Assembly: GCF_046119375.1 (NCBI RefSeq)
Contig: NW_027362769.1
Location: 330,584,001 to 330,648,000 of the forward strand
Source of the DNA: Phyllobates terribilis
Lineage: Eukaryota
Direction: 5' to 3'
Length of the DNA: 64,000 nucleotides
The notes beneath the pieces were generated by a model that was not told where the DNA came from, did no database searches, and saw only the letters and a program-made list of their open reading frames with translations. A program made the position numbers and the translations under genes. Shown one piece after another: positions 664 through 43,520 of the stretch. Positions within the stretch are counted from its first letter, which is position 1. The number at the start of each line of letters is the position of its first letter.

Positions 664-676
664 GGAAATTACTAAA

Positions 677-3600
677 ACCCTATGTGTCTTATTTGTCTAT
701 ACCTATGCCTATGGTAGATATTTGTCTGTAGCTATGCCTATGGTAGATTTTTTTGTCATATTTGTCTGTACCTATGCCTATGGTAGATTTTTTAGTCATA
801 TTTGTCTGTACCTATGCCTATGGTAGATATTTGTACCTATGCCTATGGTAGATTTTTGTACCTATGACTATGGTAGATTTTTTAGTCATATTTGTCTGTA
901 CCTATGCCTATGGTAGATATTTGTCTGTAGCTATGCCCATGGTAGATTTTTGTAGCTATGCCTATGGTAGATTTTTGTAGCTATGCCTATGGTAGATTTT
1001 TTTGTCATATTTGTCTATACCTATGCCTATGGTAGATTTTTGTACCTATGCCTATGGTAGATTTTTTAGTCTTATTTGTCTGTACCTATGCCTATGGTAG
1101 ATATTTGTACCTATGCCTATGGTAGATTTTTTAGTCATATTTGTCTGTACCTATGCCTATGGTAGATATTTGTACCTATGCCTATGGTAGATTTTTGTAC
1201 CTATGCCTATGGTAGATTTTTGTACCTATGCCTATGGTAGATTTTTTAGTCATATTTGTCTGTACCTATGCCTATGGTAGATTTTTGTAGCTATGCCTAT
1301 GGTAGATTTTTGTAGCTATGCCTATGGTAGATATTTTAGTCATATTTGTCTATACCTATGCCTATGGTAGATATTTGTCTGTAGCTATGCCTATGGTAGA
1401 TTTTTGTGTCATATTTGTCTGTACCTATGCCTATGGTAGATTTTTTAGTCATATTTGTCTGTACCTATGCCTATGGTAGATATTTGTCTGTAGCTATGCC
1501 TATGGTAGATTTTTGTAGCTATGCCTATGGTAGATTTTTTAGTCTTATTTGTCTATACCTATGCCTATGGTAGATATTTGTCTGTAGCTATGCCTATGGT
1601 AGATTTTTTAGTCATATTTGTCTGTACCTATGCCTATGGTAGATTTTTTAGTCATATTTGTCTGTACCTATGCCTATGGTAGATATTTGTACCTATGACT
1701 ATGGTAGATTTTTTAGTCATATTTGTCTGTACCTATGCCTATGGTAGATATTTGTCTGTAGCTATGCCCATGGTAGATTTTTGTAGCTATGCCTATGGTA
1801 GATTTTTGTACCTATGCCTATGGTAGATTTTTGTACCTATGCCTATGGTAGATTTTTTAGTCATATTTGTCTGTACCTATGCCTATGGTAGATATTTGTC
1901 TGTAGCTATGCCTATGGTAGATTTTTGTAGCTATGCCTATGGTAGATTTTTGTAGCTATGCCTATGGTAGATTTTTGTACCTATGCCTATGGTAGATTTT
2001 TTAGTCTTATTTGTCTGTAGCTATGCCTATGGTAGATTTTTGTAGCTATGCCTATGGTAGATTTTTGTAGCTATGCCTATGGTAGATTTTTTAGTCATAT
2101 TTGTCTGTACCTATGCCTATGGTAGATATTTGTCTGTAGCTATGCCTATGGTAGATTTTTGTAGCTATGCCTATGGTAGATTTTTGTAGCTATGCCTATG
2201 GTAGATTTTTGTACCTATGCCTATGGTAGATTTTTTAGTCTTATTTGTCTGTAGCTATGCCTATGGTAGATTTTTGTAGCTATGCCCATGGTAGATTTTT
2301 GTAGCTATGCCTATGGTAGATTTTTTTGTCATATTTGTCTATACCTATGCCTATGGTAGATTTTTGTACCTATGCCTATGGTAGATTTTTTAGTCTTATT
2401 TGTCTGTAGCTATGCCTATGGTAGATATTTGTCTGTAGCTATGCCTATGGTAGATTTTTGTAGCTATGCCTATGGTAGATTTTTTTGTCATATTTGTCTA
2501 TACCTATGCCTATGGTAGATTTTTGTACCTATGCCTATGGTAGATATTTTAGTCATATTTGTCTATACCTATGCCTATGGTAGATATTTGTCTGTAGCTA
2601 TGCCTATGGTAGATTTTTTTTGTCATATTTGTCTGTACCTATGCCTATGGTAGATATTTGTACCTATGCCTATGGTAGATTTTTTAGTCATATTTGTCTG
2701 TACCTATGCCTATGGTAGATATTTGTCTGTAGCTATGCCTATGGTAGATTTTTTAGTCATATTTGTCTGTACCTATGCCTATGGTAGATTTTTTAGTCAT
2801 ATTTGTCTGTACCTATGCCTATGGTAGATTTTTGTAGCTATGACTATGGTAGATTTTTGTGTCATATTTGTCTGTACCTATGCCTATGGTAGATTTTTTA
2901 GTCATATTTGTCTGTACCTATGCCTATGGTAGATATTTGTCTGTAGCTATGCCTATGGTAGATTTTTGTACCTATGCCTATGGTAGATTTTTTAGTCTTA
3001 TTTGTCTATACCTATGCCTATGGTAGATATTTGTCTGTAGCTATGCCTATGGTAGATTTTTTAGTCATATTTGTCTGTACCTATGCCTATGGTAGATTTT
3101 TTAGTCATATTTGTCTGTACCTATGCCTATGGTAGATTTTTGTACCTATGCCTATGGTAGATTTTTTAGTCATATTTGTCTGTACCTATGCCTATGGTAG
3201 ATATTTGTACCTATGACTATGGTAGATTTTTTAGTCATATTTGTCTGTACCTATGCCTATGGTAGATTTTTGTACCTATGCCTATGGTAGATTTTTTAGT
3301 CTTATTTGTCTGTAGCTATGCCTATGGTAGATTTTTGTAGCTATGCCTATGGTAGATTTTTTAGTCATATTTGTCTGTACCTATGCCTATGGTAGATATT
3401 TGTCTGTAGCTATGCCTATGGTAGATTTTTGTACCTATGCCTATGGTAGATTTTTTAGTCATATTTGTCTGTACCTATGCCTATGGTAGATTTTTGTACC
3501 TATGCCTATGGTAGATTTTTTAGTCATATTTGTCTGTACCTATGCCTATGGTAGATATTTGTACCTATGACTATGGTAGATTTTTTAGTCATATTTGTCT

Positions 3601-6600
3601 GTACCTATGCCTATGGTAGATTTTTGTACCTATGCCTATGGTAGATTTTTTAGTCTTATTTGTCTGTAGCTATGCCTATGGTAGATTTTTGTACCTATGC
3701 CTATGGTAGATTTTTTAGTCTTATTTGTCTGTAGCTATGCCTATGGTAGATTTTTGTGCCTATGGTAGATTTTTTTAGTCATATTTGTCTGTACCTATGC
3801 CTATGGTAGATTTTTGTGCCTATGGTAGATTTTTTTAGTCATATTTGTCTGTACCTATGCCCATGGTAGATTTTTTAGTCATATTTGTCTATACCTATGC
3901 CTATGGTAGATTTTTTAGTCATATTTGTCTGTACCTATGCCTATGGTAGATTTTTTACAGTTACAACTCGCTTCTCTGTGTTCCTGAGCTGAGAGAGGCA
4001 GGGGGATGTTTTGAGAGTGAGATAAGGCTGGAAGCTAATTTTAATATTGTCTACCTATGTGTCTTATTTGTCTATACCTATGCCTATGGTAGATATTTGT
4101 CTGTAGCTATGCCTATGGTAGATTTTTTTGTCATATTTGTCTGTACCTATGCCTATGGTAGATTTTTTAGTCATATTTGTCTGTACCTATGCCTATGGTA
4201 GATATTTGTACCTATGACTATGGTAGATTTTTTAGTCATATTTGTCTGTACCTATGCCTATGGTAGATATTTGTCTGTAGCTATGCCCATGGTAAATTTT
4301 TGTAGCTATGCCTATGGTAGATTTTTTTGTCATATTTGTCTATACCTATGCCTATGGTAGATTTTTGTACCTATGCCTATGGTAGATTTTTTAGTCTTAT
4401 TTGTCTGTAGCTATGCCTATGGTAGATTTTTGTACCTATGCCTATGGTAGATATTTTAGTCATATTTGTCTATACCTATGCCTATGGTAGATATTTGTAC
4501 CTATGCCTATGGTAGATTTTTTAGTCATATTTGTCTGTACCTATGCCTATGGTAGATATTTGTACCTATGACTATGGTAGATTTTTTAGTCATATTTGTC
4601 TGTACCTATGCCTATGGTAGATATTTGTCTGTAGCTATGCCCATGGTAGATTTTTGTAGCTATGCCTATGGTAGATTTTTGTACCTATGCCTATGGTAGA
4701 TTTTTGTACCTATGCCTATGGTAGATTTTTTAGTCATATTTGTCTGTACCTATGCCTATGGTAGATATTTGTCTGTAGCTATGCCTATGGTAGATTTTTG
4801 TAGCTATGCCTATGGTAGATTTTTGTACCTATGCCTATGGTAGATTTTTTAGTCTTATTTGTCTGTAGCTATGCCTATGGTAGATTTTTGTAGCTATGCC
4901 TATGGTAGATTTTTGTAGCTATGCCTATGGTAGATTTTTGTAGCTATGCCTATGGTAGATTTTTGTAGCTATGCCTATGGTAGATTTTTTAGTCATATTT
5001 GTCTGTAGCTATGCCTATGGTAGATATTTGTCTGTAGCTATGCCTATGGTAGATTTTTGTAGCTATGCCTATGGTAGATTTTTGTACCTATGCCTATGGT
5101 AGATTTTTTAGTCATATTTGTCTGTACCTATGCCTATGGTAGATATTTGTCTGTAGCTATGCCTATGGTAGATTTTTGTAGCTATGCCCATGGTAGATTT
5201 TTGTAGCTATGCCTATGGTAGATTTTTTTGTCATATTTGTCTATACCTATGCCTATGGTAGATTTTTGTACCTATGCCTATGGTAGATTTTTTAGTCTTA
5301 TTTGTCTGTAGCTATGCCTATGGTAGATTTTTGTACCTATGCCTATGGTAGATATTTTAGTCATATTTGTCTATACCTATGCCTATGGTAGATATTTGTC
5401 TGTAGCTATGCCTATGGTAGATTTTTTTTGTCATATTTGTCTGTACCTATGCCTATGGTAGATATTTGTACCTATGCCTATGGTAGATTTTTTAGTCATA
5501 TTTGTCTGTACCTATGCCTATGGTAGATATTTGTCTGTGCCTATGCCTATGGTAGATTTTTTAGTCTTATTTGTCTGTACCTATGCCTATGGTAGATTTT
5601 TGTAGCTATGCCTATGGTAGATTTTTGTAGCTATGCCTATGGTAGATTTTTGTAGCTATGCCTATGGTAGATATTTTAGTCATATTTGTCTGTACCTATG
5701 CCTATGGTAGATATTTGTCTGTAGCTATGCCTATGGTAGATTTTTGTAGCTATGACTATGGTAGATTTTTGTGTCATATTTGTCTGTACCTATGCCTATG
5801 GTAGATTTTTTAGTCATATTTGTCTGTACCTATGCCTATGGTAGATATTTGTCTGTAGCTATGCCTATGGTAGATTTTTTAGTCTTATTTGTCTATACCT
5901 ATGCCTATGGTAGATATTTGTCTGTAGCTATGGCTATGGTAGATTTTTTAGTCATATTTGTCTGTACCTATGCCTATGGTAGATTTTTTAGTCATATTTG
6001 TCTGTACCTATGCCTATGGTAGATTTTTGTACCTATGCCTATGGTAGATTTTTTAGTCATATTTGTCTGTACCTATGCCTATGGTAGATATTTGTACCTA
6101 TGACTATGGTAGATTTTTTAGTCATATTTGTCTGTACCTATGCCTATGGTAGATTTTTGTACCTATGCCTATGGTAGATTTTTTAGTCTTATTTGTCTGT
6201 AGCTATGCCTATGGTAGATTTTTGTACCTATGCCTATGGTAGATTTTTTAGTCTTATTTGTCTGTAGCTATGCCTATGGTAGATTTTTGTAGCTATGCCT
6301 ATGGTAGATTTTTTAGTCATATTTGTCTGTACCTATGCCTATGGTAGATATTTGTCTGTAGCTATGCCTATGGTAGATTTTTGTAGCTATGCCTATGGTA
6401 GATTTTTGTACCTATGCCTATGGTAGATTTTTTAGTCTTATTTGTCTGTAGCTATGCCTATGGTAGATTTTTGTACCTATGCCTATGGTAGATTTTTTTA
6501 GTCATATTTGTCTGTACCTATGCCCATGGTAGATTTTTTAGTCATATTTGTCTATACCTATGCCTATGGTAGATTTTTTAGTCATATTTGTCTGTACCTA

Positions 6601-6620
6601 TGCCTATGGTAGATTTTTTA
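677..6620. repeat. Satellite expanded from the left TIR: 25/29/40-bp variants around core CTATGCCTATGGTAGAT
   Basis: Short (..GATTTTTGTA), medium (..GATATTTGTCTGTA) and long (..GATTTTTTAGTCATATTTGTCTGTA) monomers are intermixed. A unique ~100-bp spacer occurs twice (about 3957-4056 and 6620-6719), marking a kb-scale duplication. Confidence 0.95.
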
Positions 6621-6867
6621 CAGTTACAACTCGCTTCTCTGTGTTCCTGAGCTGAGAGAGGCAGGGGGATGTTTTGAGAGTGAGATAAGGCTGGAAGCTA
6701 ATTTTAATATTGTCTACCTTGAGATAGTTTATAAACCCTCCTCTCACACATCCAGTACCCTAGCAACCACAGAATGCAGAGTAAGTGGACATGCTAGCTG
6801 GGGCATATCTTACAGAAGTCAAGCTGCAACACCAGGCTCTCCCATCATCACTTTGGCAAGTATTACG

Positions 6868-7330
6868 AATAACAGTTTTAAGCTCCGTTTTTTTATTGGA
6901 ATAAGTTCATATTAGTGACAGAAAGTTACTTTCCCAGTTTCATTAAGATTTTTTTAGGGATTCAGTCTTTATGTTCTGCCATATTCTTCCATACCTATGC
7001 CTAGTGTGGTTATCATGGCTGGAAACTGAATAACAGTTTTAAGCTCCATTATTGTATTGGAATAAGTTCATATTAGTGACAGAAAGTTACTTTCCCAGGT
7101 TCATCAAGATCTTTTTAGGGATTCAGTCTTTTTGTGCCGCCATATTCTTCCATACCTATGCCTAGTGTGTTATCATGGTTGGAAACTGAATAACAGTTTT
7201 AAGCTCCGTTTTTTTTATTGGAATAAGTTCATATTAGTACAACAAGGTTATTTTTCCAGTTTCATCAAGATCTTTTTAGGGATTCAGTCTTTATTTGAAT
7301 TATAAAGTTGCTATATAGGAATGTATGGGT
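6868..7330. repeat. Left subterminal ~160-bp tandem repeat (about 3 copies) of the MULE
   Basis: AATAACAGTTTTAAGCTCC starts at 6868, 7029 and 7189. The units contain CATACCTATGCCTAG, the same core as the TIR satellite. Inverted copies occur at about 15265-15575. Confidence 0.9.
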
Positions 7331-8126
7331 GTTCAACTTTCTTCCCAAAATAATCTCTGCTAATGGTAACCAGATCTTCCATCTAAATATAGCACAGTAA
7401 ATGTTATCTGTCCTCGATCTAGCTTGCCATATAATAAATGGCTCCATACAATGTAGCTGCCCCTGCTGAAGTCAAGTTTTCACTTCCAGGATGGATGATA
7501 ATTCTTCGGTTTGGGTTTGTTGGGGATAAAACTTGGAGTACTGTACTGGTAGCTGCAAACGTTGGACCTCTGCACGGTCTGTCAAATTTTCTTCACGCCA
7601 CCAGTAGGAAAGTGCTTTAAGCCGGCATGGTTGTTGACCTTACCATACTCACCCTACTGTCTTATACGTTGTCTATTACTATTTACAGTTAAAATGTAGG
7701 AATATACAGTATCATAACTTATCTAAAGTGCTTCTATTTTAAAGGATATACCTTGTTACTGTCTCATACAAAGTATTTGTGGATATGGTGTAAAAGTTAC
7801 CAACTTTTATGACATTTCAGAGGATACAATTTCACTAATTTGGAGCAAAGGTCCACTGGACAACCATGCTACATCGGATATTTCTCTTCAGTATGCTTAC
7901 ATTCAAGAACTAACAAAAAGGTAGTATGAAGTTGTGTGATTTATGGCTTAGCTTCTTTTGATACTAATCTTTAGTGTACATTTACTTAAATTTTAAAATT
8001 GCTTTTCATTTCAGACTAAATTTTATTTTATTGAATCAGCTTTGGCTTCAAGTAGTTTTGAATAATTTAAGATTTTTAATTTTGCATTAAATAATTAAAT
8101 TAAAATATATAAATATTTTTATTTAA

Positions 8127-9120
8127 AGAGGAACTATCAATTGTTTTAAATTAATATTTTTATTATATAAAAAAATTTGAATAGGTCTTTAATATTATTT
8201 TTTTTAGTTTTTGTAACTATTCCTACACTAAACTGTTCCTAAGGCTATGTTCACACGCTGCGTTTTTTGCTGCGTTTTTTCATGCTAATTATGCTAATTT
8301 AAAGCAGCAAAGTACAGTACCAGCAAAGTCTATGAGATTTGCAGAATTGCTGTTCACACGCTTGTTCTTTTTTAACCTGCATTTCTTGTTTGTTTATTAG
8401 CTGCTTTTTTCAAAGAATGAACATGTCAATTCTCTGCTGCGTTTTTTGCTGCTTTGCTCCATAGGAAGCAATGATAAGGCAAAAACGCAGCAAAAAACGC
8501 AGCAAACCAACATTTTGCAAGCAGGTCAAAAGTTCATGGTTTTTCCTACGATTTTTGCCACCTAATTAGCATAAAAAACGCAGCAAAACGCACCATGTGA
8601 ACTTAGCCTAAATCACTCAGTTGCAAAAACGCAACCGACTGTCCCTTGCTAAGCTATCCTCCTAAACCGTTTTCACATTGAAGACGCTTTAGTAGAATGA
8701 ATGCGCGTGCACGCGTGTCCCCGGGCATCACATGAGTGCTTAGCTCGCTTCTCATGGGAAGCGAGCCAGCGCTCAGCTGTACTGAATGCATGGCAGCTGT
8801 GCCATCCCAGGCACGGCGCCATGTAATCTACTGCGCTGCAACCCCGGGAAACATCTCCCGAGGCTTCAGCGTATATATGCTCTGTATACCGCGATGTGCG
8901 GGCACGCCGGCGAGGACGCGCACACGTCATCAGCCGGCGTGCACGTGCCTCCCGGCATTTGTTCAGTTGCGGGACGGCCCAGAAGAGGAGCTTCGTGGGC
9001 CGACAGGAGGGTAATTAAGAAGTTTTTTATTTTTAAACCGGTCCAAATGGGTTCAGGGGGGAGGGGGGACCCAAAAAAAAAAAAAAGAAAAAAAAGGTAA
9101 ATGATAGTTAATCTTTAAAT
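8127..9120 (+). promoter_or_regulatory. Direct-repeat module A: CpG-rich putative promoter plus non-coding exon 1 of the transposase gene
   Basis: CpG-rich 8700-9010; donor GAGG|GTAATT at 9011; acceptor TTCTTTACAG| at 9196; ATG at 9209. Diverged direct copy at 13763-14150. Confidence 0.6.
8243..8608. mobile_element. PIF/Harbinger-type MITE
   Basis: TIRs GGCTATGTTCACAC / GTGAACTTAGCC; TAA TSD (8240-8242, 8609-8611); the empty site CCTAAATCACT is visible in module B near 13877. Confidence 0.9.
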
Positions 9121-9208
9121 GACTTCTTGTTTAGGTTTTTATATTGTTTGAATTTTTGTATCTTTTTTTCATAATTAAAAAAAAAGTTCTTTACAGGAAT
9201 TTTGAACA

Positions 9209-12200
9209 ATGGGCATCAAATCTTTAGTAAAGAAAAATAAAAGAGAATCTACAGTACCAGAGAATAAAGAAATACAAGGAACCCCAGGCAAAAATAAGGA
9301 TGTGACAAAATTAAGTTCAGAACAAACAGTTTCAGAGACAACTAATTCACATTCAACATCAAGATTTTTAGCATTGTATCTTCCATTTCACAATAAGAAG
9401 AAACCAAAAAGTGGTGGAAATGTAAAGAAATGTATATGCACTGAAGACTTATTGAAAGCTGCTACTAGACTGTTTGAAAGAAGTCCAAACACTGAAGTGA
9501 ATTCAAGCGTTAGTAGTGTGAGCTTCTGGTGCAAGCTTGGCGAAGAAGTAGCGCCAAAAACCAAAACGCACAGAAAAAAACTTATCCAAAATTATAGCTT
9601 AGCATGTAGAAACCTCTGGGACACAGATTTCAACTTTAGAGAATGTATTATGAAAGTCACCAACAAAGAAAAATGTGAAAAACAAGGAATCCCACGCCAA
9701 CCTCTTTTTTCTCGAACTATCAGTGAACAAAGTCTGCCTACATTAAAAGAACAAAAAACAGAACCGGAGAATGAAATGAAGAAGGATTATGATGACAGTG
9801 CTCTTGGTAAATACAACAAGATTGAAGCAGTGTCTGATGACATGGAATCATTCACTGGAGACAACAGTTACTGTTCAGAGAAAGGGCTACATGAAAGTAA
9901 TTCAATGGTAAGGATGAATTTGTGATTTATGAGCCCAAAAATATTACAAATAACAATGTTTACACAAAAATACTGACAAAATAACACCAACTGAAGCATT
10001 TGAGATTCTGAAGAAAGGTGATAAGTGTAGGGTGACCAATTTGCCACCACTTAATCCACAGCATGGTGATGTTTTACTTTTACAAAGAAGGAAAAGCAAG
10101 GGATTGCATAGCAGATCAATTGCAGTTTGATTACATCTCCAGGAACAAGTATACCTTTAAAGGGGAAACATGCTTCAAGGTTATATACAAGCCAAGACAC
10201 CCACCAGAAGAGGTATGTGAACTTCTTGAAAAGTACATTTTTAGCCTCGGTCAAACTGATAACAGTTGCAGGCTAACTCAGTACTTTGGAAATCCAAATA
10301 CAATGCACCTTAAAGCCCATGGTAATCGCAAACACTACAAGAACAAGATATTTTTTACTACTGCACCACCAATCATTAAAGAACAGAGGGAAAACTTATC
10401 ACAGCCACCCATGAAAGTTTATAAAGCACAGTGTACACGTTTCATACCTCCACAATATGAAGCTGCTTTAGGACCGCGTGATGTAAAGCAGGCACAAAAC
10501 AGTGCTATGAGAGAGTGTGTAAAGCGTTGTTTGTGCCAAGATGATGTTTATTCCATAGTTGAATTGGAGCGCTTGTTTGGTGGTTTTGTAAAGCAGCTAG
10601 ATGTCCTACATGATTTCTATTGTATCCTTGCAAAAGAAGAACTAATAGAAGAAGCGAATACATTTGCAAAACACAAGGACAGCAACTTCAGTTGTGACAC
10701 AACTTTCGAGTTTGGTCATTTTTATGTGACTACTGTTACATTTAACCACCCTGCTTTTCAAAATGCATGTGTAATTCCAATTTTCATATTGATGCACCAA
10801 AAGAAAGATGAAGGTACACACAGAAAGTTCTTCAATTTTATTTCTGAAAAGTGTCCAGCATTTAACAGCAACATGGTGAAAATCATTACTGACCGTGAAA
10901 AGGCAATTACAAACAGTATAGATGCACAGCTTCCCCAGGTTAAATGATTCCTGTGTTGGAACCACATGAGGAAAGATGTGCAATACTGAACGCAAAGGCA
11001 TGGTTGACAACAAATGGACAAATTAACATATGAAAGCTGTATTTACAGTTAAATGAACAGCAAGACACCAAACGAATATGTAAGTAAGTTAGAAGAACTT
11101 AGCCAACATTGGACAGAAGAATTCCTCACTTACTATAAGAAGCACCTGGAATCAGATATCCTCAATTACTGTGCAAGGTGGCTTTTAGAAGAACACATGT
11201 TCATAGAACCTTCAGGAATAACAACAAATCAAAGTGAGAGTTTTAATTCTGTGCTAAGAAGACATCATGATGGGAAAGAAATAAACATGGAAGGTTTTGT
11301 TCTGTCTATGTTTTACTTAACTTCTTACTACACGAAGGAAGTTCTGAGAGGGAGATGTGGACTGGGTAACTTCAACCTGAAAGGAGAGTTCTGAGCTCTA
11401 AACCCAGCAGATGTATCATTTCCTGAAGTACTGGTAACACTCGAAAGCTTGGCGGAATTTTTAAAGGAACAAAAACTTGTGATCACAAAAGAAAATGCAT
11501 GTAAAACAGGAAGCCATCTGCCAAGAAGAACAATGGCAGAAGGAATTCTCAATACACCAGGTGGTATTGTGTTGGTGCCACAGCAGAAAGTATTCCTCGT
11601 TAAAGGTTTTAAAAATGAATCTTACATTGTGCAACTTTTCCCAAAGACTTCTTGTTCATGTCCACAATCCAGACAGTGTCACCACATTATGGCAGTTCTG
11701 CTATCAGTGGGATTGGATCCAAGGGAAGAGACAGATGAAGGAAATCTAAGCAGGTTGTACAAAAAACAAAGGGGAAAAGGAAAAAGTGGACGGAAGTTCA
11801 CTTCTAAACCATGATTGACATCTCCAGCTGATGACTCAATCCAAAGCATGAATCGAAATAATGGAGACGAGGAGGCAACACTTACAACACAAGTTATGCC
11901 AGGATACAGTGCACGAACTGCAAAAATTGTTAAAATATCACCACCTGAACCATCCGTAGGTATGCCTAAACTTCATGTCATAACCACAAAAAAGGTTGTT
12001 CTGAATTACAAGCAGTGGTTCCAGGCACGGTAAAAGTTATCACAGTTACTGGTGATACAACTGTGACACTCCCAGAAGTAAGCAGTCAGTGGTGGTCAGA
12101 TGCAGATTTTACACCAACAGTGCAACCAGGACCTCAAAACTTTTGTACTGTTAATTGGATGACTAATTTATGTAATACAATTTGGGAAGCCAATTCAAGC

Positions 12201-12413
12201 ATCTGTTATGCAGGAGTGAATTGTTGCCAGCCTAATAGAAATGTGTGTGCAACAGAGGAAGATATGAAAATGGTTTTCTGTGACTTTGCATGCCAAGATT
12301 GGTACCACAAAGCACTAGTGAAGGACTATCTGATAAACAATTACCATCTATGTACAAATGCAGAAAATGTCAAAATGCTGAATAGGAGGTGTAAAGTACC
12401 TTTTCCTTGTTAG
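9209..12413 (+). pseudogene. Fragmented MULE (Mutator) transposase: N-terminal region, MULE DDE domain, SWIM zinc finger, C-terminal PHD-like remnant
   Basis: ORF pieces 9209-9925, 10063-10947, 11053-11394, 11449-11814 and 12015-12413. Motifs: AHGNRKH; CDTTF..YVT; TDREKAI; LCWNH just past the stop at 10947; SWIM CSCPQSRQCHHIMAV; CDFACQDWYH. Multiple stops and frameshifts. Confidence 0.85.
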
Positions 12414-12477
12414 TATGTAACATTATTAAGCAACTTATGGTTTAAGTGTAAACAGAATATGTTTGATTTCTTTTTAA

Positions 12478-13758
12478 CCCCTTACTTACCGGGGACGTAT
12501 TAGTACGCATATCTGCGTACCGCCGGTTCAGTGAGGGCTCCGGCGCTGAGCCCTCACTGAACCGAGCACATGTCAGCTGATTCTTACAGCTGACATGTGC
12601 CCGCAACAGCCGCGGGTGGAATCGCGATCCACCCGCGGCTGTTAACCAGTTAAATGCCGCTGTCAATCTCCGACAGCAGCATTTAACGCGCGCTTCCGGG
12701 TAGCGCGTCATAAGCCCCGCCCACCGGCGACCCCGTCACGTGATCGCGGGTCGCCGATGGGCGTGCATGACAACCCAGGGTCTGCAGCAGACGCCTGTGG
12801 TTGTCATGATCTTGTCGCTATGAGCGCCACCTAGTGGTCGGCGCTCATAGCACAGGACCATTTCTGCTGCATGCAGGGGATCTGCTGGTCCCCTGTATGT
12901 AGCAGAGGCGATCGGACAGTTGCTGCTTCTAGTCTCCTATGGAGACTATAGAAGCATGCAAAAAGTAAAAAAAAAAAAGTTTTTAAAAATATAAAAAAAA
13001 ATAAAAAAATATAAAAGTTTAAATCACCCCCCTTTCGCCCCATTCAAAATAAAATATATAAAAAAAAAAACCACATACACATATTTGGTATCGCCGCGTT
13101 CAGAATCGCCCGATCTATCAAAATAAAAAAAGAATTATTCCGATCGGTAAACGGCGTAGCGAGAAAAAAATTCTAAACGCCAGAATTACGTTTTTTGGTC
13201 GCCGCAAAATTGCAATAAAATGCAATAACGGGCGATCAAAACATCGGATCTACCCCAAATGTTATCAATAAAAACGTCAGCCTGGCACGCAAAAAATAAG
13301 CCATCAACCAGCCCCAGATCACGAAAAATGGAGACGCTACGGGTCTTAGAAAATGGCGCTATTTTTTTATTTTTTTTTTTACCAAATTTTGGAATTTTTT
13401 TTCACCACTTAAATATAAAAGAACCTATACATGTTTGGTGTCTATGAACTCGTAATGACCTGTAGAATAAGAAGGGCAGGTCAGTTTTAGCATTCAGTGA
13501 ACATGGTAAAAAAAATAAATAAAAAACAACTGGGGTATTGCACTTTTTTTGCAATTTTACCGCACTTGGAATTTTTTTCCTGTTTTCCCGTACAGGATAT
13601 GATAAAACTAGTAATGGCGTTGAAAAGTACAACTCGTCCCGCAAAAAATAAGCCCTCACATGGCCATATTGACCAAAAAATAAAAACGCTATGGCTCTGG
13701 GAACAAGGGGAGCAAAAACGAAAATGCAAAAACGAAAAATGCTCCGGGGCTTAAGGGG
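12478..13758. mobile_element. piggyBac-like non-autonomous element nested in the MULE
   Basis: TTAA|CCCCTTA ... TAAGGGG|TTAA (TTAA at 12474-12477 and 13759-13762); no transposase ORF. Confidence 0.85.
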
Positions 13759-13762
13759 TTAA

Positions 13763-14150
13763 AGAGTAACTATAAATTTTTTGTTATTAACATTTATTAT
13801 ATAAAAAAAAAAAATTTTTGAATAAGTCTTTTTTTTTTATTCTTACATTTTTCACACATCCTACAATAATCTGTCCCTAAATCACTAATTTGAAAACATG
13901 CAACTAACTGTCCCTCGCTAAACTATTCTCCTAAAGCGTATTCAGATTGAAGACGTTTTAGGAGAATGAATGCCCGAGGATGTGCGTGCACGCGCATTCC
14001 GGCAACTGTTCAGTTGCACTTTGGCCCAGAACAGGAGCTTCGTGGGCCGGCAGGAGGGTAAGTAAGAAGTTTTCTTATTTTAAACAGGTCCTAATGGGTT
14101 AAGGGGGTTCTAGAAAAAAAACCTTCAAACATGATAGTTACCCTTTAATA
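13763..14150 (+). repeat. Direct-repeat module B (diverged copy of 8127-9120, lacking the MITE and ~200 bp of the CpG core)
   Basis: Collinear blocks AGAGTAACTAT, CCTAAATCACT, TTGAAGACG..AGAATGAATGC, TTGTTCAGTTGC/CTGTTCAGTTGC, GGAGCTTCGTGGGCCG.CAGGAGG|GTAAGT (donor at 14058), ATGATAGTTA. Confidence 0.85.
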
Positions 14151-14451
14151 TGGTTTTGTCAAGTATTCGTAATCCATTCAGTTGTGTAAATGTTAACTTA
14201 AATATTTCTCCCAAATAAAATAGTTTTATGTAACATAGATGCTATGTTTTGATTTGTTTTAAATAAGGTTATGTCAATATTCGTAATCCATTCAGTCATG
14301 TAAGTGTTAACTTAATTATTTTTCTGTAATGAAAATACTTTTATGTAACTTATACTTCATCATCTAATCTAGGATTCAGCATTCATTTCAAATCTACAGT
14401 AACATATATGTGACTTGTGTTTACAACAGACAGCTTAATTTCGCCTCATAA

Positions 14452-14757
14452 GGGCTTGTTCACACAGGCAGCGTTTTCGCGTTTTTTCAGCGCATCCATT
14501 CTGCGCTGAAAAAACGAGCCTATTGTTGTCAATGGGCTAGTGCAGACACTCCGCTTTTTCTGCGCATCGAACGGATGCGCAGAAAAAAGCGACAGCATGT
14601 CCGTTTTTGCCGCGCAGAACGGACTGCCGCCGCCTATTTGAATGACTGTGTGCGCTAAAAACCAGCGACACAGTAATTCAGCATGCACTTCTTATGCTTG
14701 TGCGCATAAAAAGCGCATGCACATAACGGAGCCGAAACGGCCAGTGTGAGTGAGCCC
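14452..14757. mobile_element. PIF/Harbinger-type MITE
   Basis: Ends GGGCTTGTTCACAC / GTGTGAGTGAGCCC with TWA flanks. Confidence 0.7.
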
Positions 14758-14899
14758 TTAATTTTTTTTTTAAATACAGTAAACTGTATATTTTATTTTA
14801 TCAGTAAACTGAGATCAGAGAGATTAAGAAAACCATTTAAAAAAACTGTGCCATTGCCATAGTCTTGTGTGAAAATCAAACAAACAAAAACAAGGGCTT

Positions 14900-15758
14900 T
14901 AAGGCAAAATTTTTCGATAAAGATCTACTTAGGGATTCACTGTTTATTTGAAATGTAAAGTTATTATATAGGAATGCATGAATTAACATTGTTGAAAACA
15001 GAATTACATTTTTAAGCTCTGTTTTTCTTGTTGGAATAAGTTCATATTAATGACAAACTTATTTTCAGAGTTGCATCAAGATCTTATTAGGGATTCAGTG
15101 CTTATTTGAAATTTAAAGTTACTATATAGAAATGTATGGGTTTGCCTTGTTGAAAACACAATTACAGTTTTAACCTCTGCTAATTTATTTTTAAATAGAG
15201 TGAAGTGGAAAGGAAAAATACATTAAAAAAATTAAACTGTAAAAAAAAACTACCATAGGCCTAGGTATAGAAGAATATGGCGGTGCATAAAGACTGAATC
15301 CCTAAAAAGATCTTAATGAAACTTGGAAGATAACCTTGTTGTACTAATATTAATTTATTCCAATAAAAAAAAAAACAGAGCTTAAAACCGTTATTCAGTT
15401 TCCAACCATGATAACACACTAGGCATAGGTATGGAAGAATATGGCGGCGCATAAAGACTGAATCCCTAAAAAGATCTTAATGAAACTTGGAAGATAACCT
15501 TGTTGTACTAATATGAACTTATTCCAATAAAAAAAACAGAGCTTAAAACCGTTATTCAGTTTCCAAAAAAGTTAACCCCTACATTCATGTATAGCAACTT
15601 TATGTCAAATAAATACATAAGTAAATAAATTGGTTATTCTGCTTTAAATAGAGTGAAGTGGAAAGGAAAACTTAATTAAGAAAATGAAACTGTAAAAAAA
15701 AAAACTACCATAGGCATAGGTATAGATAAATGTGGCACATAGGGTTTTAGTATGCACC
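14900..15758. repeat. Right terminal/subterminal repeat of the MULE (locally palindromic)
   Basis: Direct copies of the ~160-bp unit at about 14925-15175 are followed by inverted copies at about 15265-15575. The satellite core occurs only in isolated copies (CTACCATAGGCCTAGG near 15250, CTACCATAGGCATAGG near 15706). Confidence 0.85.
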
Positions 15759-17110
15759 GTCTAGCCTAGACTACTCCTCACCTAAAGCTCTGTAGGGTCC
15801 AGGCTAGACTACTTCTCACCTAAAGCACTGTAGGGTCCAGGCTAGACTACTTCTCACCTAAAGCTCTGTAGGGTCCAGGCTAGACTACTCCTCACCTATA
15901 GCTCTGTAGTGCTCAGGCTAGACTACTTCTCACCTAAAGCTCTGTAGGGTCCAGCCTAGACTACTCCTCACCTATAGCTCTGTAGGGTCCAGGCTAGACT
16001 ACTCCTCACCTATAGCTCTGTAGTGCTCAGGCTAGACTACTCCTCACCTAAAACTCTGTAGGGTCCGGGATAGACTACTCCTCACCTAAAGCTCTTCAGT
16101 GCTCAGGCTAGACTACTTCTCACCTAAAGCTCTGTAGAGTCCAGGCTAGACTACTCCTCACCTATAGCTCTGTAGGGTCCAGGCTAGACTACTCCTCACC
16201 TATAGCTCTGTAGGGTCCAGGCTAGACTACTCCTCACCTAAAACTCTGTAGGGTCCGGGATAGACTACTCCTCACCTAAAGCTCTTCAGTGCTCAGGCTA
16301 GACTATTCCTCACCTATAGCTCTTCAGTGCTCAGGCTAGACTACGCCTCACCTAAAACTCTGTAGAGTCCAGGCTAGACTACTTCTCACCTAAAGCTCTG
16401 TAGGGTCCAGGCTAGACTACTCCTCACCTAAAGCTCTTCAGTGCTCAGGCTAGACTACTCCTCACCTAAAGCTCTGTAGAGTCCAGGCTAGACTACTCCT
16501 CACCTAAAACTCTGTAGGGTCCGGGATAGACTACTCCTCACCTAAAGCTCTTCAGTGCTCAGGCTAGACTATTCCTCACCTAAAGCTCTGTAGGGTCCGG
16601 GATAGACTACTCCTCACCTATAGCTCTTCAGTGCTCAGGCTAGACTATTCCTCACCTAAAGCTCTGTAGGGTCCGGGATAGACTACTCCTCACCTAAAGC
16701 TCTTCAGTGCTCAGGCTAGACTACTCCTCACCTAAAACTCTGTAGGGTCCAGGATAGACTACTCCTCACCTATAGCTCTTCAGTGCTCAGGCTAGACTAC
16801 TCCTCACCTATAGCTCTGTAGAGTCCAGGCTAGACTACTCCTCACCTAAAACTCTGTAGAGTCCAGGCTAGACTACTCCTCACCTATAGCTCTGTAGAGT
16901 CCAGGCTAGACTACTCCTCACCTAAAGCTCTGTAGGGTCCAGGCTAGACTACTCCTCACCTAAAGCTCTGTAGGGTCCAGGCTAGACTACTTCTCACCTA
17001 AAGCTCTGTAGGGTCCAGGCTAGACTACTTCTCACCTAAAGCTCTGTAGGGTCCAGGCTAGACTACTTCTCACCTAAAACTCTGTAGGGTCCGGGATAGA
17101 CTTCTCCTCA
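15759..17110. repeat. 38-bp tandem satellite, right part
   Basis: Same unit and orientation as 1-663, with TCTTCAGTGCTCAGG and GTCCGGGATAG variants; ends ~160 bp before the THUMPD1 ATG. Confidence 0.95.
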
Positions 17111-17268
17111 CTGCAATATACCAGTCTTAAGCCTCCATCAAACACGTGCACTGCCACTTCCTGTTAGGAACTTCCGCCCTGCGCTGGTAAAGCTCCGCCT
17201 CTTCGGGTGACGTCATCTTTCGCTGCCTCCGCTCTGTAAACCCGGTTATTTGTGTGCGTGCAGCCAGG
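17111..17268 (+). promoter_or_regulatory. THUMPD1 core promoter/5'UTR
   Basis: E-box CACGTG (~17143), ETS-like CACTTCCTG and AACTTCCG, CRE TGACGTCA (~17208), CpG-rich, directly upstream of the ATG. Confidence 0.65.
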
Positions 17269-17469
17269 ATGAGCGCCGAGGTGCAGAAGGGGAAGAAGAG
17301 AGGAAAGGCGCAGTATGTGAGCAATGCCAAGCGGCACCGGGGCGGACGGCAGCTGGAGGTGGGCATGCAGGGGGTCCTCATCACCTGCAACATGAACGAG
17401 AGGAAGTGCGTGGGGGAAGCGTACAGCCTGCTCAACGAGTATGGAGACCTGCTGTACGGCGCCGAGAAG
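17269..17469 (+). CDS. THUMPD1: THUMP domain-containing protein 1, coding exon 1
   Basis: MSAEVQKGKKRGKAQY...GMQGVLITCNMNERKCVGEAYSLLNEYGDLLYGAEK; donor AAG|GTGGGT, phase 0. Confidence 0.95.
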
Positions 17470-17812
17470 GTGGGTGCCGCCTGTGAGGCGGGGGGCTGCG
17501 ATCCCACCTGGGGAACTACAACTCCCAGCATGCAATGACAGCTGCACATCGTAAGAGCATGCTGGGAGTTGTAGTCCTGTAACAGCTGCTGATTCTTTCC
17601 AATTTTGTAGTTCGGCTGCAGCCTTGGGACCTGTGCACATAGCATGGATTTACTGACCGATCCGTCTGAACTAGAACGCTTTTTGTGTTTTTTTTTTGTT
17701 TGTTTTTTTGCAGCAAGGATAAAAATCCACACAGATTGTTTCCCATTGCATGTGAATATAGTCATAGACACCCCAGTAACTTGCATTGGATGCAGATTTG
17801 CTGTGGATAGGT

Positions 17813-41186: not shown

Positions 41187-42643
41187 CTGAAAAAAAAAAA
41201 AAAAAAAATAGTACATCATTAGGTTACCATATCACATTTCATACATGATCCTGGCGAAGAACGCAAGTATTTCTTCCTACAGGAGGACAAATAAGTTGGA
41301 TGTAAGCTCGCTCTCTACGGAGGGTGGCCGTGCCATTATTACGATTAGTGGGGGCTTATCCAGGTAACTACACTTTTATAGGACATCTAGCTTTTAAATT
41401 AGAAAACCCCTTTCCGCAATATAGATTTTTTCAGTTCCAATTCTTCACGTGTTGGAATTATCAGAACGAATCATAAGCATAAACCTCTTCTCCACATAGC
41501 TCTTTCTGGCAGATAGGGTATTAGTAGTCATTTCCACGTATTTGCCAGTGACAGTGAGGAAGTTAAATATTAACATTACAAACATTTAGCAGCCAATGTG
41601 TTACGCCAATAGTTTATGATGATGGCGGAGGCAACAAAACCTGCGATCTGGGATATGTGACACCAAATAGCATCAGCCAGGTCCGCAAGTGGAGAAAAAG
41701 CAGTGTCTAGTTGCCATCGAAACACCAGCCCAAGATGTGCCATATGGTGGGCAGATACACAGACCCCAGAAAGAAGTTCCCACGAATCTTCCACTGTTTA
41801 GATGGTTGAAAACGCTCTCCTGATTTTACCAAAACCCAGAGATAGTCTAAAGCAGTGGACAAATATTAGATCACAAATGTAAGCATTGACCAGAAGATCT
41901 TATGAGTAGGTCACCAGACATTTCACATGTTTGTTCCCTCAAAGCCAACAGGTTTCGGTTTCTACACGCCCATAGGTCAGACATGCAGAATCTGAATCCT
42001 TATTTTCCTGGAAAAAAATAAAATGGATACTAGTAGGAGCTAAATGTTTTTACCACTGGTCCTACGTAGAAAACCAAAAGCAAGTTCTATAGTGAAAGGA
42101 CACCAGGTTTTGAAAAAAAAAAGAGGAAAAACCCACCACACACATTATTTAAAAGGGTTATTCCAACTATATATCCATGGGATAGGCTATAAATATCTAA
42201 TAGGTGTGGGCCCAAATCTATCTCTAAAACAAAGGTCCCCGATCCCCATCCCTTCTGGTGACCCCATCCCACCGCAATTCGGAAAATAAATCAAATCAAT
42301 GGATGGGTTTCTGCTAAGGGACTAAACAAAATATCTGAAAACACTTGTGAATTGCAAATTCCATCCTAGGGAGGAACCTCAAATCTTAGGAGAAAAAATT
42401 TTTAGAAGGGGCACTTGAGGAAAAGAGGTTTTAAACATTGACAGGTCAAGGGGGCGCAAGTTCTAAAAAAGCCTTCAACAATTACAACTGGAGTTTGGGC
42501 TTCCCCATGAACTTTTCTATCAACACCTGCGATTAAGACATTCTTTTACCTCTCAAAATAAACTATCACCTATAAAATTTGTGAACATTGATGCAGTTGT
42601 CTCCTCGGAGTCTACTAGAAGGCTAATTTCACATAACTATAAA

Positions 42644-43520
42644 CAACTAATAGATGGTGGCCCGATTCTAATGCATCGGGTATTCTAGAATAGGTATGCG
42701 GCCGACCGGGCGCAATCATCAGAGCGGTATTTAAATTTGGCGCCAAAATCGCTGATTGGTTGAGGCCGGCAACCGCGACCAATTAGCAAAGCGGTGTTAA
42801 AATTTGGCGCCTATATCGCAGATTGGTCACGGCCGCGACTAATCAGCAGAGCGTTATTTAAATTTGGCGCCAATAATGCTGGTTATTCGTGACCGGTAAC
42901 CGCCACCAATCAGCACAGCGGTGTTTAAGTTTGCCGCCCATCACGCGGATTGGTCGCGGTGGCCGGCCGCGACCAATCAGCGTCGTATTAGTGTGGGCCC
43001 GGGAGCGGCGCTGCCTGTGCGGCTCCTTCAGCTGCGAGAAGCCGGGAGATGAGCGGCTACTCGCAGCAGAAGCATCCCGACCGGCGGCGCCACTCCCCGG
43101 TCCTCCATTCACACTTGCTGTCGGGAGATCAGCGGGCCAAGCCGCTGATCTTCCGACATTAGCCGCATGGAGGTCAGCGGCGCCGGTCGGGGTAGTTGTG
43201 CTGCTAGCGCCGCTCATTTCCCGGCTGCATCGCCGCTGACCTATGTCCGCCAGATGAGCCGCTAACGGCCGCCATCTTTTTTCAGAAATCCCGTGGCGTT
43301 GATTGGCCGCTGCCGGACCAATGAGCGACGCGGGATTTCCTGGACNNNNNNNNNNNNNNNNNNNNNNNNNNNNNNNNNNNNNNNNNNNNNNNNNNNNNNN
43401 NNNNNNNNNNNNNNNNNNNNNNNNNNNNNNNNNNNNNNNNNNNNNNNNNNNNNNNNNNNNNNNNNNNNNNNNNNNNNNNNNNNNNNNNNNNNNNNNNNNN
43501 NNNNACAGACAAATACAATG
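42644..43520 (+). mobile_element. Probable non-autonomous Helitron/Helentron-like element with CCAAT-rich tandem core
   Basis: 5' subterminal hairpin CCCGAT-TCTAATGC-ATCGGG; ~60-70-bp CpG-rich repeats with CCAATCAG/CTGATTGG; the gap is flanked by GGAC..ACAGAC, suggesting a (GACA)n tract. Confidence 0.45.
43346..43504. other. Assembly gap (N run)
   Basis: 159 consecutive N. Confidence 1.

Follow-up and report, generated by a model that had tools for sequence, protein, structure and literature searches.

A structured insertion within a 38-bp satellite

The window considered here is a stretch of 64,000 nucleotides (64 kb) of Phyllobates terribilis DNA (contig NW_027362769.1, positions 330,584,001 to 330,648,000); all coordinates below are counted from its first letter. 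Positions 664-15758 hold a 15-kb block with inverted ends, a long tandem array at the left end, remnants of a transposase gene and a palindromic right end, and the block interrupts a satellite with a 38-bp unit. We conclude that the block is very probably one inactive copy of an autonomous type-2 foldback Mutator-like element (MULE) that was inserted into this satellite. The features that define the element and its target are listed here from left to right (TIR, terminal inverted repeat; ORF, open reading frame):

21-663: left flank, 38-bp satellite, 16.9 units
664-723, + strand: left terminus, with the outer GGAAAT at 664-669 and then the arm at 670-723
690-3955, + strand: array block 1, a tandem TIR-internal module with core CTATGCCTATGGTAG and spacings of mainly 25, 40 and 29 bp
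3956-4056, + strand: array-to-interior junction copy, identical to 6619-6719
4054-6620, + strand: array block 2, opening with a partial TIR (4054-4098) without the outermost 15 nt and continuing as array
6867-7330, + strand: left subterminal units of ~161 bp, 2.7-3 copies, with a TIR-like head (..TTCCATACCTATGCCTAGTGTG..)
10015-11958, + strand: MULE transposase core in a single frame with seven in-frame stops
12123-12314, + strand: PHD-finger remnant, frameshifted and degenerate, within the ORF at 12015-12413
14912-15180, + strand: two right-end units of ~158 bp in left-end orientation, forming one arm of a palindrome
15248-15576, - strand: two inverted right-end units of ~164 bp, 85-95% identical to the left units
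15699-15758, - strand: right terminus, with the arm at 15699-15752 (one core copy) and the outer 6 nt at 15753-15758
15759-17111: right flank, the same 38-bp satellite as on the left, 35.6 units

The two flanks were delimited with Tandem Repeats Finder (TRF) and by phase analysis, in which each flank was matched to rotations of the 38-bp unit so that the satellite phase could be read at the insertion site. On the left the satellite breaks off at unit position 38 (coordinate 663); on the right it is taken up again at unit position 30 (coordinate 15759). Therefore, exactly 9 bp were duplicated. The two copies of this target-site duplication (TSD), GTCCAGCCT at 655-663 on the left and GTCTAGCCT at 15759-15767 on the right, are identical at eight of nine positions. 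As evidence for a TSD the phase argument is stronger than the bare match of two 9-mers, and a length of 9 bp falls within the 8-11 bp (mostly 9 bp) that characterize MULE insertions. By the same phase analysis, the interval 664-15758 is entirely foreign to the satellite, and its parts are not separated from one another by any satellite sequence.

The ends of the element

Inside the duplicated target site the two ends of the block are, apart from their outermost bases, inverted copies of each other. The TIR arms (670-723 and 15699-15752) are 54 nt long and 89% identical, and they start 6 nt inside the TSD. The outermost 6 nt are not inverted: GGAAAT is found on the left and GGTGCA, in reverse complement, on the right. 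The arms share an exact 17-mer, TACTAAAACCCTATGTG, which occurs in the 64 kb only at 670 (+ strand) and at 15736 (- strand), a count reached in none of 100 shuffles; one additional site with two mismatches is situated at 41510. Thus, TIRs stand at both boundaries of the duplication, as in MULEs. A metagenome scan with the 17-nt terminal motif produced 38 loci, none of which extended into the TIR or held the core; these loci are chance matches or unrelated repeats.

The transposase

A single reading frame from 10015 to ~12033, interrupted by seven stops and with no frameshift, encodes the transposase. Its SWIM domain was recognized by Pfam above the cut-off (27.5 bits), and full-length relatives (described below) align back by tBLASTn to 10015-11958 over ~530-600 residues in one frame, with E-values from 1e-50 to 1e-89. 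In the MAFFT alignment with these relatives the residues expected of a DDE-type MULE transposase (D, D, CxxH, W and E in [ST]N..ES.N) are all present: D in CDTTF, D and E in ITDRE, the motif CWNH, W in HWTEEF and E in TNQSESFN. Also kept are the cysteines and histidine of the SWIM domain (CSC..CHH) and the motif KSGRK. The copy retains every position conserved in the clade, and its MULE blocks align to columns conserved in at least 80% of the relatives. The possibility of a hAT, Merlin or other superfamily transposase was ruled out, as the transposase is unambiguously of MULE type.

Downstream of the SWIM domain, the PHD-finger remnant (Pfam E-value 0.014, with the motif CDFACQDWYH) is homologous to residues 952-1004 of the relative designated P0002 (E-value 1.6e-5). 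The distance between the SWIM domain and the PHD remnant is ~109 codons here versus ~336 in P0002; therefore, the Ulp1/C48 protease domain is absent from the window copy.

These observations bear out most of what an earlier note, made from the letters of the stretch, had proposed for the block. Its 9-bp TSD with eight matching positions is confirmed by the satellite phase, and its inverted ends are recovered as 54-nt arms with an exact 17-mer at both outer boundaries. The MULE-SWIM transposase remnants are upheld by the Pfam SWIM match, the tBLASTn alignments and the catalytic residues. The claim of a single element agrees with the single TSD, the inverted ends at the boundaries and the transposase remnants found within.

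A tandem array grown from the left terminal repeat

The left end is dominated by a tandem array ~6 kb long. The repeated module of ~25-40 bp is a part of the terminal repeat. Allowing at most two mismatches, we counted 182 copies of the core CTATGCCTATGGTAG in 664-6620 (at 690-6620), every one of them on the + strand; the - strand carries just two copies of the core, at 15250 and 15705. The orientation of the core is thus strictly + at the left end and - at the right end. Distances between successive cores are mainly 25 bp (75 times), 40 bp (72 times) and 29 bp (26 times), with 41 bp found five times, and a few spacer variants recur in higher-order patterns across the whole 6-kb array.

The two edges of the array indicate how it arose. 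The array starts within the TIR and closes with GGTAGATTTTTTACAGTT; the right TIR, where the module is present as a single copy, continues in the same way (GGTAG-T11-ACAGTT). The sequence TTTTTACAGTT follows both the end of the array and the right TIR, and the array unit equals the TIR module. The start within the TIR and an end like that of the single-copy right TIR therefore show that the array was amplified in place and not captured as foreign DNA.

The array is divided into two blocks by a copy of its own boundary with the interior. With the adjoining array counted, 240 bp are identical between the junctions at 3956-4056 and 6619-6719, and the copy at 3956-4056 is joined via a CCT microhomology to TIR position ~681. 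Judging from this sequence arrangement, the junction copy is very probably the mark of a tandem duplication within the element that is recent, spans at least 2.6 kb and took in a part of the TIR.

Subterminal units and the palindromic right end

A second tier of repeats is present at both ends. A module of ~40 bp (..TATGTG..TCTATACCTATGCCTATGGTAG..) occurs once per TIR, and a diverged form of it heads each of the ~160-bp subterminal units. On the left, TRF reported a 161-bp tandem repeat at 6867-7294 (2.7 copies), while the inverted units on the right were found as a 164-bp repeat at 15256-15566 (1.9 copies). In most of the ~160-bp units the core is represented by just 13 nt (ATACCTATGCCTA, then GTGTG); it is complete, apart from one mismatch, in the unit at 15241-15281.

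Since the units at 14912-15180 are oriented like those on the left, the right end is palindromic. The segment 14943-15105 pairs with 15451-15613 at 79-82% identity; folded as a single strand, the right end reaches -102 kcal/mol versus -55 kcal/mol for shuffled sequences (z = -7.5). Repeated motifs in mirror orientation, able to fold back, are what defines a type-2 foldback element. The terminal ~94 bp are present twice in the right end, with 15190-15281 as an internal copy, 88% identical to 15643-15736.

The modular architecture of the termini had been anticipated in the earlier note, and for the most part it is seen here: the core, the ~160-bp units and the palindromic right end were all found, the last of these substantiated by the pairing and by the folding energy. 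The statement that the subterminal units carry the same core needs correction, as most of them have just the 13-nt part. The proposal that a motif of the element's own terminal repeat seeded the tandem array agrees with the growth in place of the TIR-internal module. The related wording that the terminal repeat had become a satellite holds for the origin of the array from the TIR module, but goes too far in another respect: the array is known solely from the inside of one end of one copy.

Relatives of the transposase

A 294-aa piece of the transposase was used in a HMMER search against 1.84 billion cluster representatives (15 billion proteins). The search returned 630 relatives, the best of them 38% identical; a look-up of the exact product showed that the 294-aa ORF itself is not on record. 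Among 27 long relatives, the MULE domain was detected in 20, Peptidase_C48 (Ulp1) in 11, an N-terminal CG-1-like domain in eight, a C-terminal PHD finger in seven and FLYWCH in one. With Pfam MULE the relatives score 29-33 bits, over the cut-off.

In a quick maximum likelihood tree of 47 sequences (IQ-TREE) the window protein lies on a long branch inside the clade of the relatives. Its sister group, with a Shimodaira-Hasegawa-like approximate likelihood ratio test (SH-aLRT) support of 94, includes a mirid-bug protein and Logan proteins; the enclosing group (SH-aLRT 96) adds proteins from a mormyrid fish, two caecilians and Spea bombifrons. The Spea bombifrons protein (P0098) is 26% identical to the window protein, and no TIRs or arrays flank its gene within +/-10 kb. 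A distant relative (loci L001 and L002) has ~2.2 kb of degenerate subterminal modules of 160-190 bp.

Several observations on these relatives are worth recording. In the intervals 9332-10600 and 11444-11889 of the metagenomic contig L001, which encodes protein P0161, lie a 244-bp tandem array (5.2 copies, 98% matches) and, downstream of the subterminal modules of the contig, a cluster of ~32-bp palindromic repeats of the form GGACA..TGCATATGCA..TGTCC. N-terminal matches to CG-1, the CAMTA DNA-binding domain, were seen in P0001, P0002, P0006, P0008, P0041 and P0098 (best E-value 1.8e-11). The usual N-terminal fingers of MULE transposases are of the WRKY, FLYWCH or FAR1 type; this clade may possess, in its CG-1-like N-terminus, a DNA-binding module not described before. 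The two caecilian proteins (P0051 and P0182, from Geotrypetes seraphini and Microcaecilia unicolor) are MULE-derived, ~520 aa long and fall into one cluster at 90% identity; one of them is mis-titled as an isoform of tyrosine-tRNA ligase. They could stem from a transposase gene that has been domesticated or from a fusion during annotation.

Indirect support for further copies came from 31-mers sampled in the transposase and in the right end and compared with sequencing runs of organisms designated here by letters. DNA-run contigs contained both sets of 31-mers in organism A (0.45-0.65) and organism B (0.32-0.52). The DNA of organism C contained transposase 31-mers (0.48) and that of organism G right-end 31-mers (0.31). 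Both stretches were also present in RNA runs of organisms A, D and E, and the right end in one RNA run of organism H (0.10-0.28).

Nested elements, an orphan ORF and the neighbouring gene

About 3 kb of the 15-kb element consists of unrelated nested miniature inverted-repeat transposable elements (MITEs). Boundaries of the nested elements were taken from a reading of the sequence and comparison of direct repeats. They are given below together with an additional ORF:

8127-9114, + strand: nested MITE copy 1, TIR AGAGGAACTATCA, TTAA at 8123-8126 and 9115-9118
8243-8608: Tourist-like MITE inside copy 1, with TAA flanks
9209-9925, + strand: orphan ORF, intact, 238 aa, directly upstream of the transposase
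12478-13758: nested 1.28-kb element with CCCCTTA.. termini, TTAA at 12474-12477 and 13759-13762
13763-14144, + strand: nested MITE copy 2, TTAA at 13759-13762 and 14145-14148
14452-14757: nested MITE with termini of the GGGCTTGTTCACAC type

MITE copies 1 and 2 belong to one family: they are 74-85% identical, have the same orientation and the same termini, AGAG(G/T)AACTAT(C/A)A, and they bracket the transposase. An extra GC-rich insert of ~208 bp (8729-8936) in copy 1 is missing in copy 2, and both copies contain a splice-donor-like sequence, CAGGAGG|GTAA(G/T)TAAG. A role of 8127-9114 and 13763-14144 as promoter or first-exon modules of the element was considered and rejected; both are TTAA-flanked MITE copies with TIRs of their own. 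The TTAA at 13759-13762 is shared between the 1.28-kb element, on its right side, and MITE copy 2, on its left side; therefore, two TTAA-targeting insertions struck one and the same tetranucleotide. A blastn comparison of 6601-15758 with the rest of the window detected no further copy of the nested MITEs.

The orphan ORF at 9209-9925 has no Pfam match and no homologue among the relatives, and its Atlas recognition is low. It may have arisen by chance, but a second gene or a lineage-specific N-terminal exon is also conceivable.

On its right side the element is close to a gene. The region 17112-17470 adjoins the right satellite flank, and the ~2 kb of 38-bp satellite end ~160 bp upstream of a start codon (17269) in the first exon of a THUMP-domain gene; for this exon the leads are to the THUMP family only. 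The 15-kb transposon is thus situated within the promoter-proximal satellite of the THUMP-domain gene. Elsewhere in the window, a run of 159 Ns (43346-43504) represents an assembly gap or a masked stretch.

Comparison with known foldback MULEs

The design described above is that of a type-2 foldback MULE, and it resembles Rehavkus, Tm1 and Muta1. The suggestion in the earlier note that the element is structurally unusual for its superfamily does not hold, as these three share its design, and to speak of a family goes beyond the single copy present in the 64 kb; the accompanying remark that foldback-like modular TIRs are known in Phantom-type MULEs is correct, as seen from the Tm1 and Muta1 papers.

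Muta1 of Aedes aegypti and Tm1 of Meloidogyne (root-knot nematodes), both of the Phantom subclass, combine, as the element does, a terminal motif with tandem subterminal repeats whose numbers are unequal at the two ends. In both, the subterminal repeats are 12-15 bp long and TSDs are 8-9 bp (PMC5499845, PMC3169594). In Tm1 the tandem-repeat TIRs vary, TSDs measure 9 bp and the tips, 7 bp long, are asymmetric (PMC3169594); these tips, located outside the inverted repeat, are comparable to the asymmetric 6-nt tips found here. For Muta1 it was demonstrated that more subterminal repeats give stronger transposase binding and higher excision and that the repeats are needed for donor cleavage; repeat numbers are unequal between the ends of natural Muta1 derivatives as well (PMC5499845). 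Unlike Muta1 and Tm1, the present element has 182 repeats over 6 kb, far more than either, and an extra tier of ~160-bp units.

Phantom transposases, of ~500 aa, consist of an N-terminal FLYWCH finger and a MULE domain (PMC3169594). In contrast, relatives of the window protein combine CG-1-like, SWIM, Ulp1 and PHD domains in ~950-1050 aa. A Pfam search at E <= 1 detected no FLYWCH in the ORFs of the window, and just one of the 27 long relatives has it. Membership in Phantom was therefore rejected on domain content.

Ulp1 is carried by plant MULEs such as KI-MULE/Kaonashi and VANDAL. The association of Ulp1/C48 with a MULE transposase is thus common to plant MULEs and 11 of the 27 relatives, whereas the window copy is without C48. 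Animal relatives with C48 encode it, along with the PHD finger, as a fusion inside the transposase ORF.

Rehavkus was described as a sister group of MULEs whose members are 4.9-18.5 kb long, produce 9-bp TSDs, have TIRs of 26-412 bp, encode a PHD finger and contain a minisatellite close to one end; its reported hosts are arthropods (insects) and an annelid only (PMC6446971). Repbase entries include Rehavkus-1_TC, Rehavkus-3_TC and Rehavkus-1_HR. In Tribolium, the number of monomers per end ranges between a few and 50 in the terminal repeats of Rehavkus, one of which has grown to an 80-kb satellite (bioRxiv 10.1101/2024.12.02.626372). A similar case is Tetris of Drosophila virilis, a foldback transposon from whose internal tandem repeats the units of a nascent satellite are derived (PMC4079207). 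The array of the window element, in contrast, is known inside the element only.

A probable history of the copy

The features of the locus are consistent with the following sequence of events. The element was inserted into the 38-bp satellite near the THUMP-domain gene and duplicated 9 bp of it, presumably by DDE-type cut-and-paste transposition with a 9-bp staggered cleavage of the target. By analogy with Muta1 and Mu, the repeated module is most likely the putative binding site of the N-terminal region of the transposase, and several such sites, again as in those systems, would allow several molecules of transposase to be loaded. The array at the left end is an amplification, to 182 copies, of what lies between ..CCCTATGTG and TTTTTACAGTT.., for which slippage during replication or unequal exchange is the presumed cause. 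Afterwards a tandem duplication of at least 2.6 kb, mediated by microhomology, copied a part of the TIR along with the array-to-interior junction. Subsequently the copy decayed: it has seven stops, at least one frameshift, no Ulp1 domain and a degenerate PHD finger, and it received at least five nested MITE insertions.

Alternative explanations

Some observations weigh against the reading of the block as one foldback MULE with an array grown from its own end. The TIR arms are just 89% identical and their outer 6 nt differ. Pfam MULE gave the stop-truncated piece of the transposase 18.6 bits, below the cut-off of 27.6 bits. No second copy of the element was found by blastn of 6601-15758 against the rest of the 64-kb window. 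The length of the array and the identical 240 bp could in part reflect mis-assembly of a tandem array, and binding of the module by the transposase is presumed from other systems.

The block could be a composite locus, the product of independent insertions, one bringing the array with the left end and another the transposase block; an example would be a non-autonomous foldback relative situated beside or nested in an autonomous element. The 15 kb would then never have been mobilized as one element. Units present in both orientations at the right end (14912-15180 on the + strand and 15248-15576 on the - strand) are in agreement with such an origin, as are the second copy of the terminal ~94 bp (15190-15281 versus 15643-15736, 88%), a possible trace of a nested family member, and the partial TIR inside the array (4054-4098). 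Nevertheless, we consider it highly improbable: there is a single 9-bp duplication with no satellite between the parts, the terminal 17-mer is situated solely at the two outer boundaries, and the partial TIR at 4054, being without the outer 15 nt and lying at the 240-bp-identical junction, agrees with a tandem duplication, not with an additional insertion. Another reading is that the one-sided array and the internal duplication are mostly an assembly artefact, the true element having modest repeats at each end. Tandem arrays are prone to collapse or expansion in assembly, and perfect identity over 240 bp at the duplication boundary is what such an error could leave. However, the two blocks differ in length and in the order of unit variants; their best alignments reach 82-86% identity with many gaps, unlike those of a simply duplicated contig, and the unit variants give consistent higher-order patterns over 6 kb. 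An artefact on this scale is, arguably, improbable.

Both of these possibilities concern the integrity of the copy; another one concerns its kinship. If the element belonged to the Rehavkus lineage proper, it would be the first vertebrate Rehavkus. Points of likeness are a 9-bp TSD, one ORF, a C-terminal PHD finger (degenerate in the window copy), a minisatellite beside one TIR and a size within the range of 4.9-18.5 kb given for this group (PMC6446971). The catalytic blocks, however, differ. In Rehavkus they were published as ..D(A/S)TGSVVR.. and TNNAIERYFGILK, and a comparison by eye with the published alignment sets DATGSVVR and TNNAIERYF against DTTF.LG and N.SES.N here; the clade of the element has DTTF.(L/F)G and GIT.N.SES.N, which is canonical for MULEs, and the relatives pass the Pfam MULE cut-off. 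The position of the array differs too: the Rehavkus minisatellite precedes the 3' TIR, whereas the array described here is at the end upstream of the transposase. Assignment to Rehavkus seems unlikely, and we prefer to regard the element as a type-2 foldback MULE with a canonical transposase.

Implications

A survey of MULEs in 2019 asked whether the superfamily is truly absent from vertebrates and judged the vertebrate entries in Repbase to be misidentified (PMC6446971). MULE-MuDR is a routine category in repeat annotation of anurans; well-documented vertebrate MULEs are scarce in the literature. The single copy described here unites TIRs, a 9-bp TSD proven by satellite phase and a near full-length transposase with the complete catalytic signature, and it thus provides clean evidence of MULE transposition in the host lineage. 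For annotation, it accounts for the 15-kb block directly upstream of the first exon of the THUMP-domain gene.

The same copy displays the passage from a module to a kilobase-scale array, with presumed slippage of units, higher-order patterns and microhomology-mediated duplication of a block. Most documented cases of this process come from beetles, flies and nematodes, and few from vertebrates. A further-reaching proposal, which we put forward tentatively and with more doubt than conviction, is that the element represents an undescribed, recently active lineage of autonomous vertebrate MULEs (CG-1-like, MULE, SWIM, (Ulp1), PHD) on a deep branch of its own, with at most 38% identity to other proteins, whose module makes true satellite arrays. 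If so, the lineage would answer the published question on bona fide vertebrate MULEs and would make it possible to study, in a vertebrate, how transposon ends give rise to satellites.

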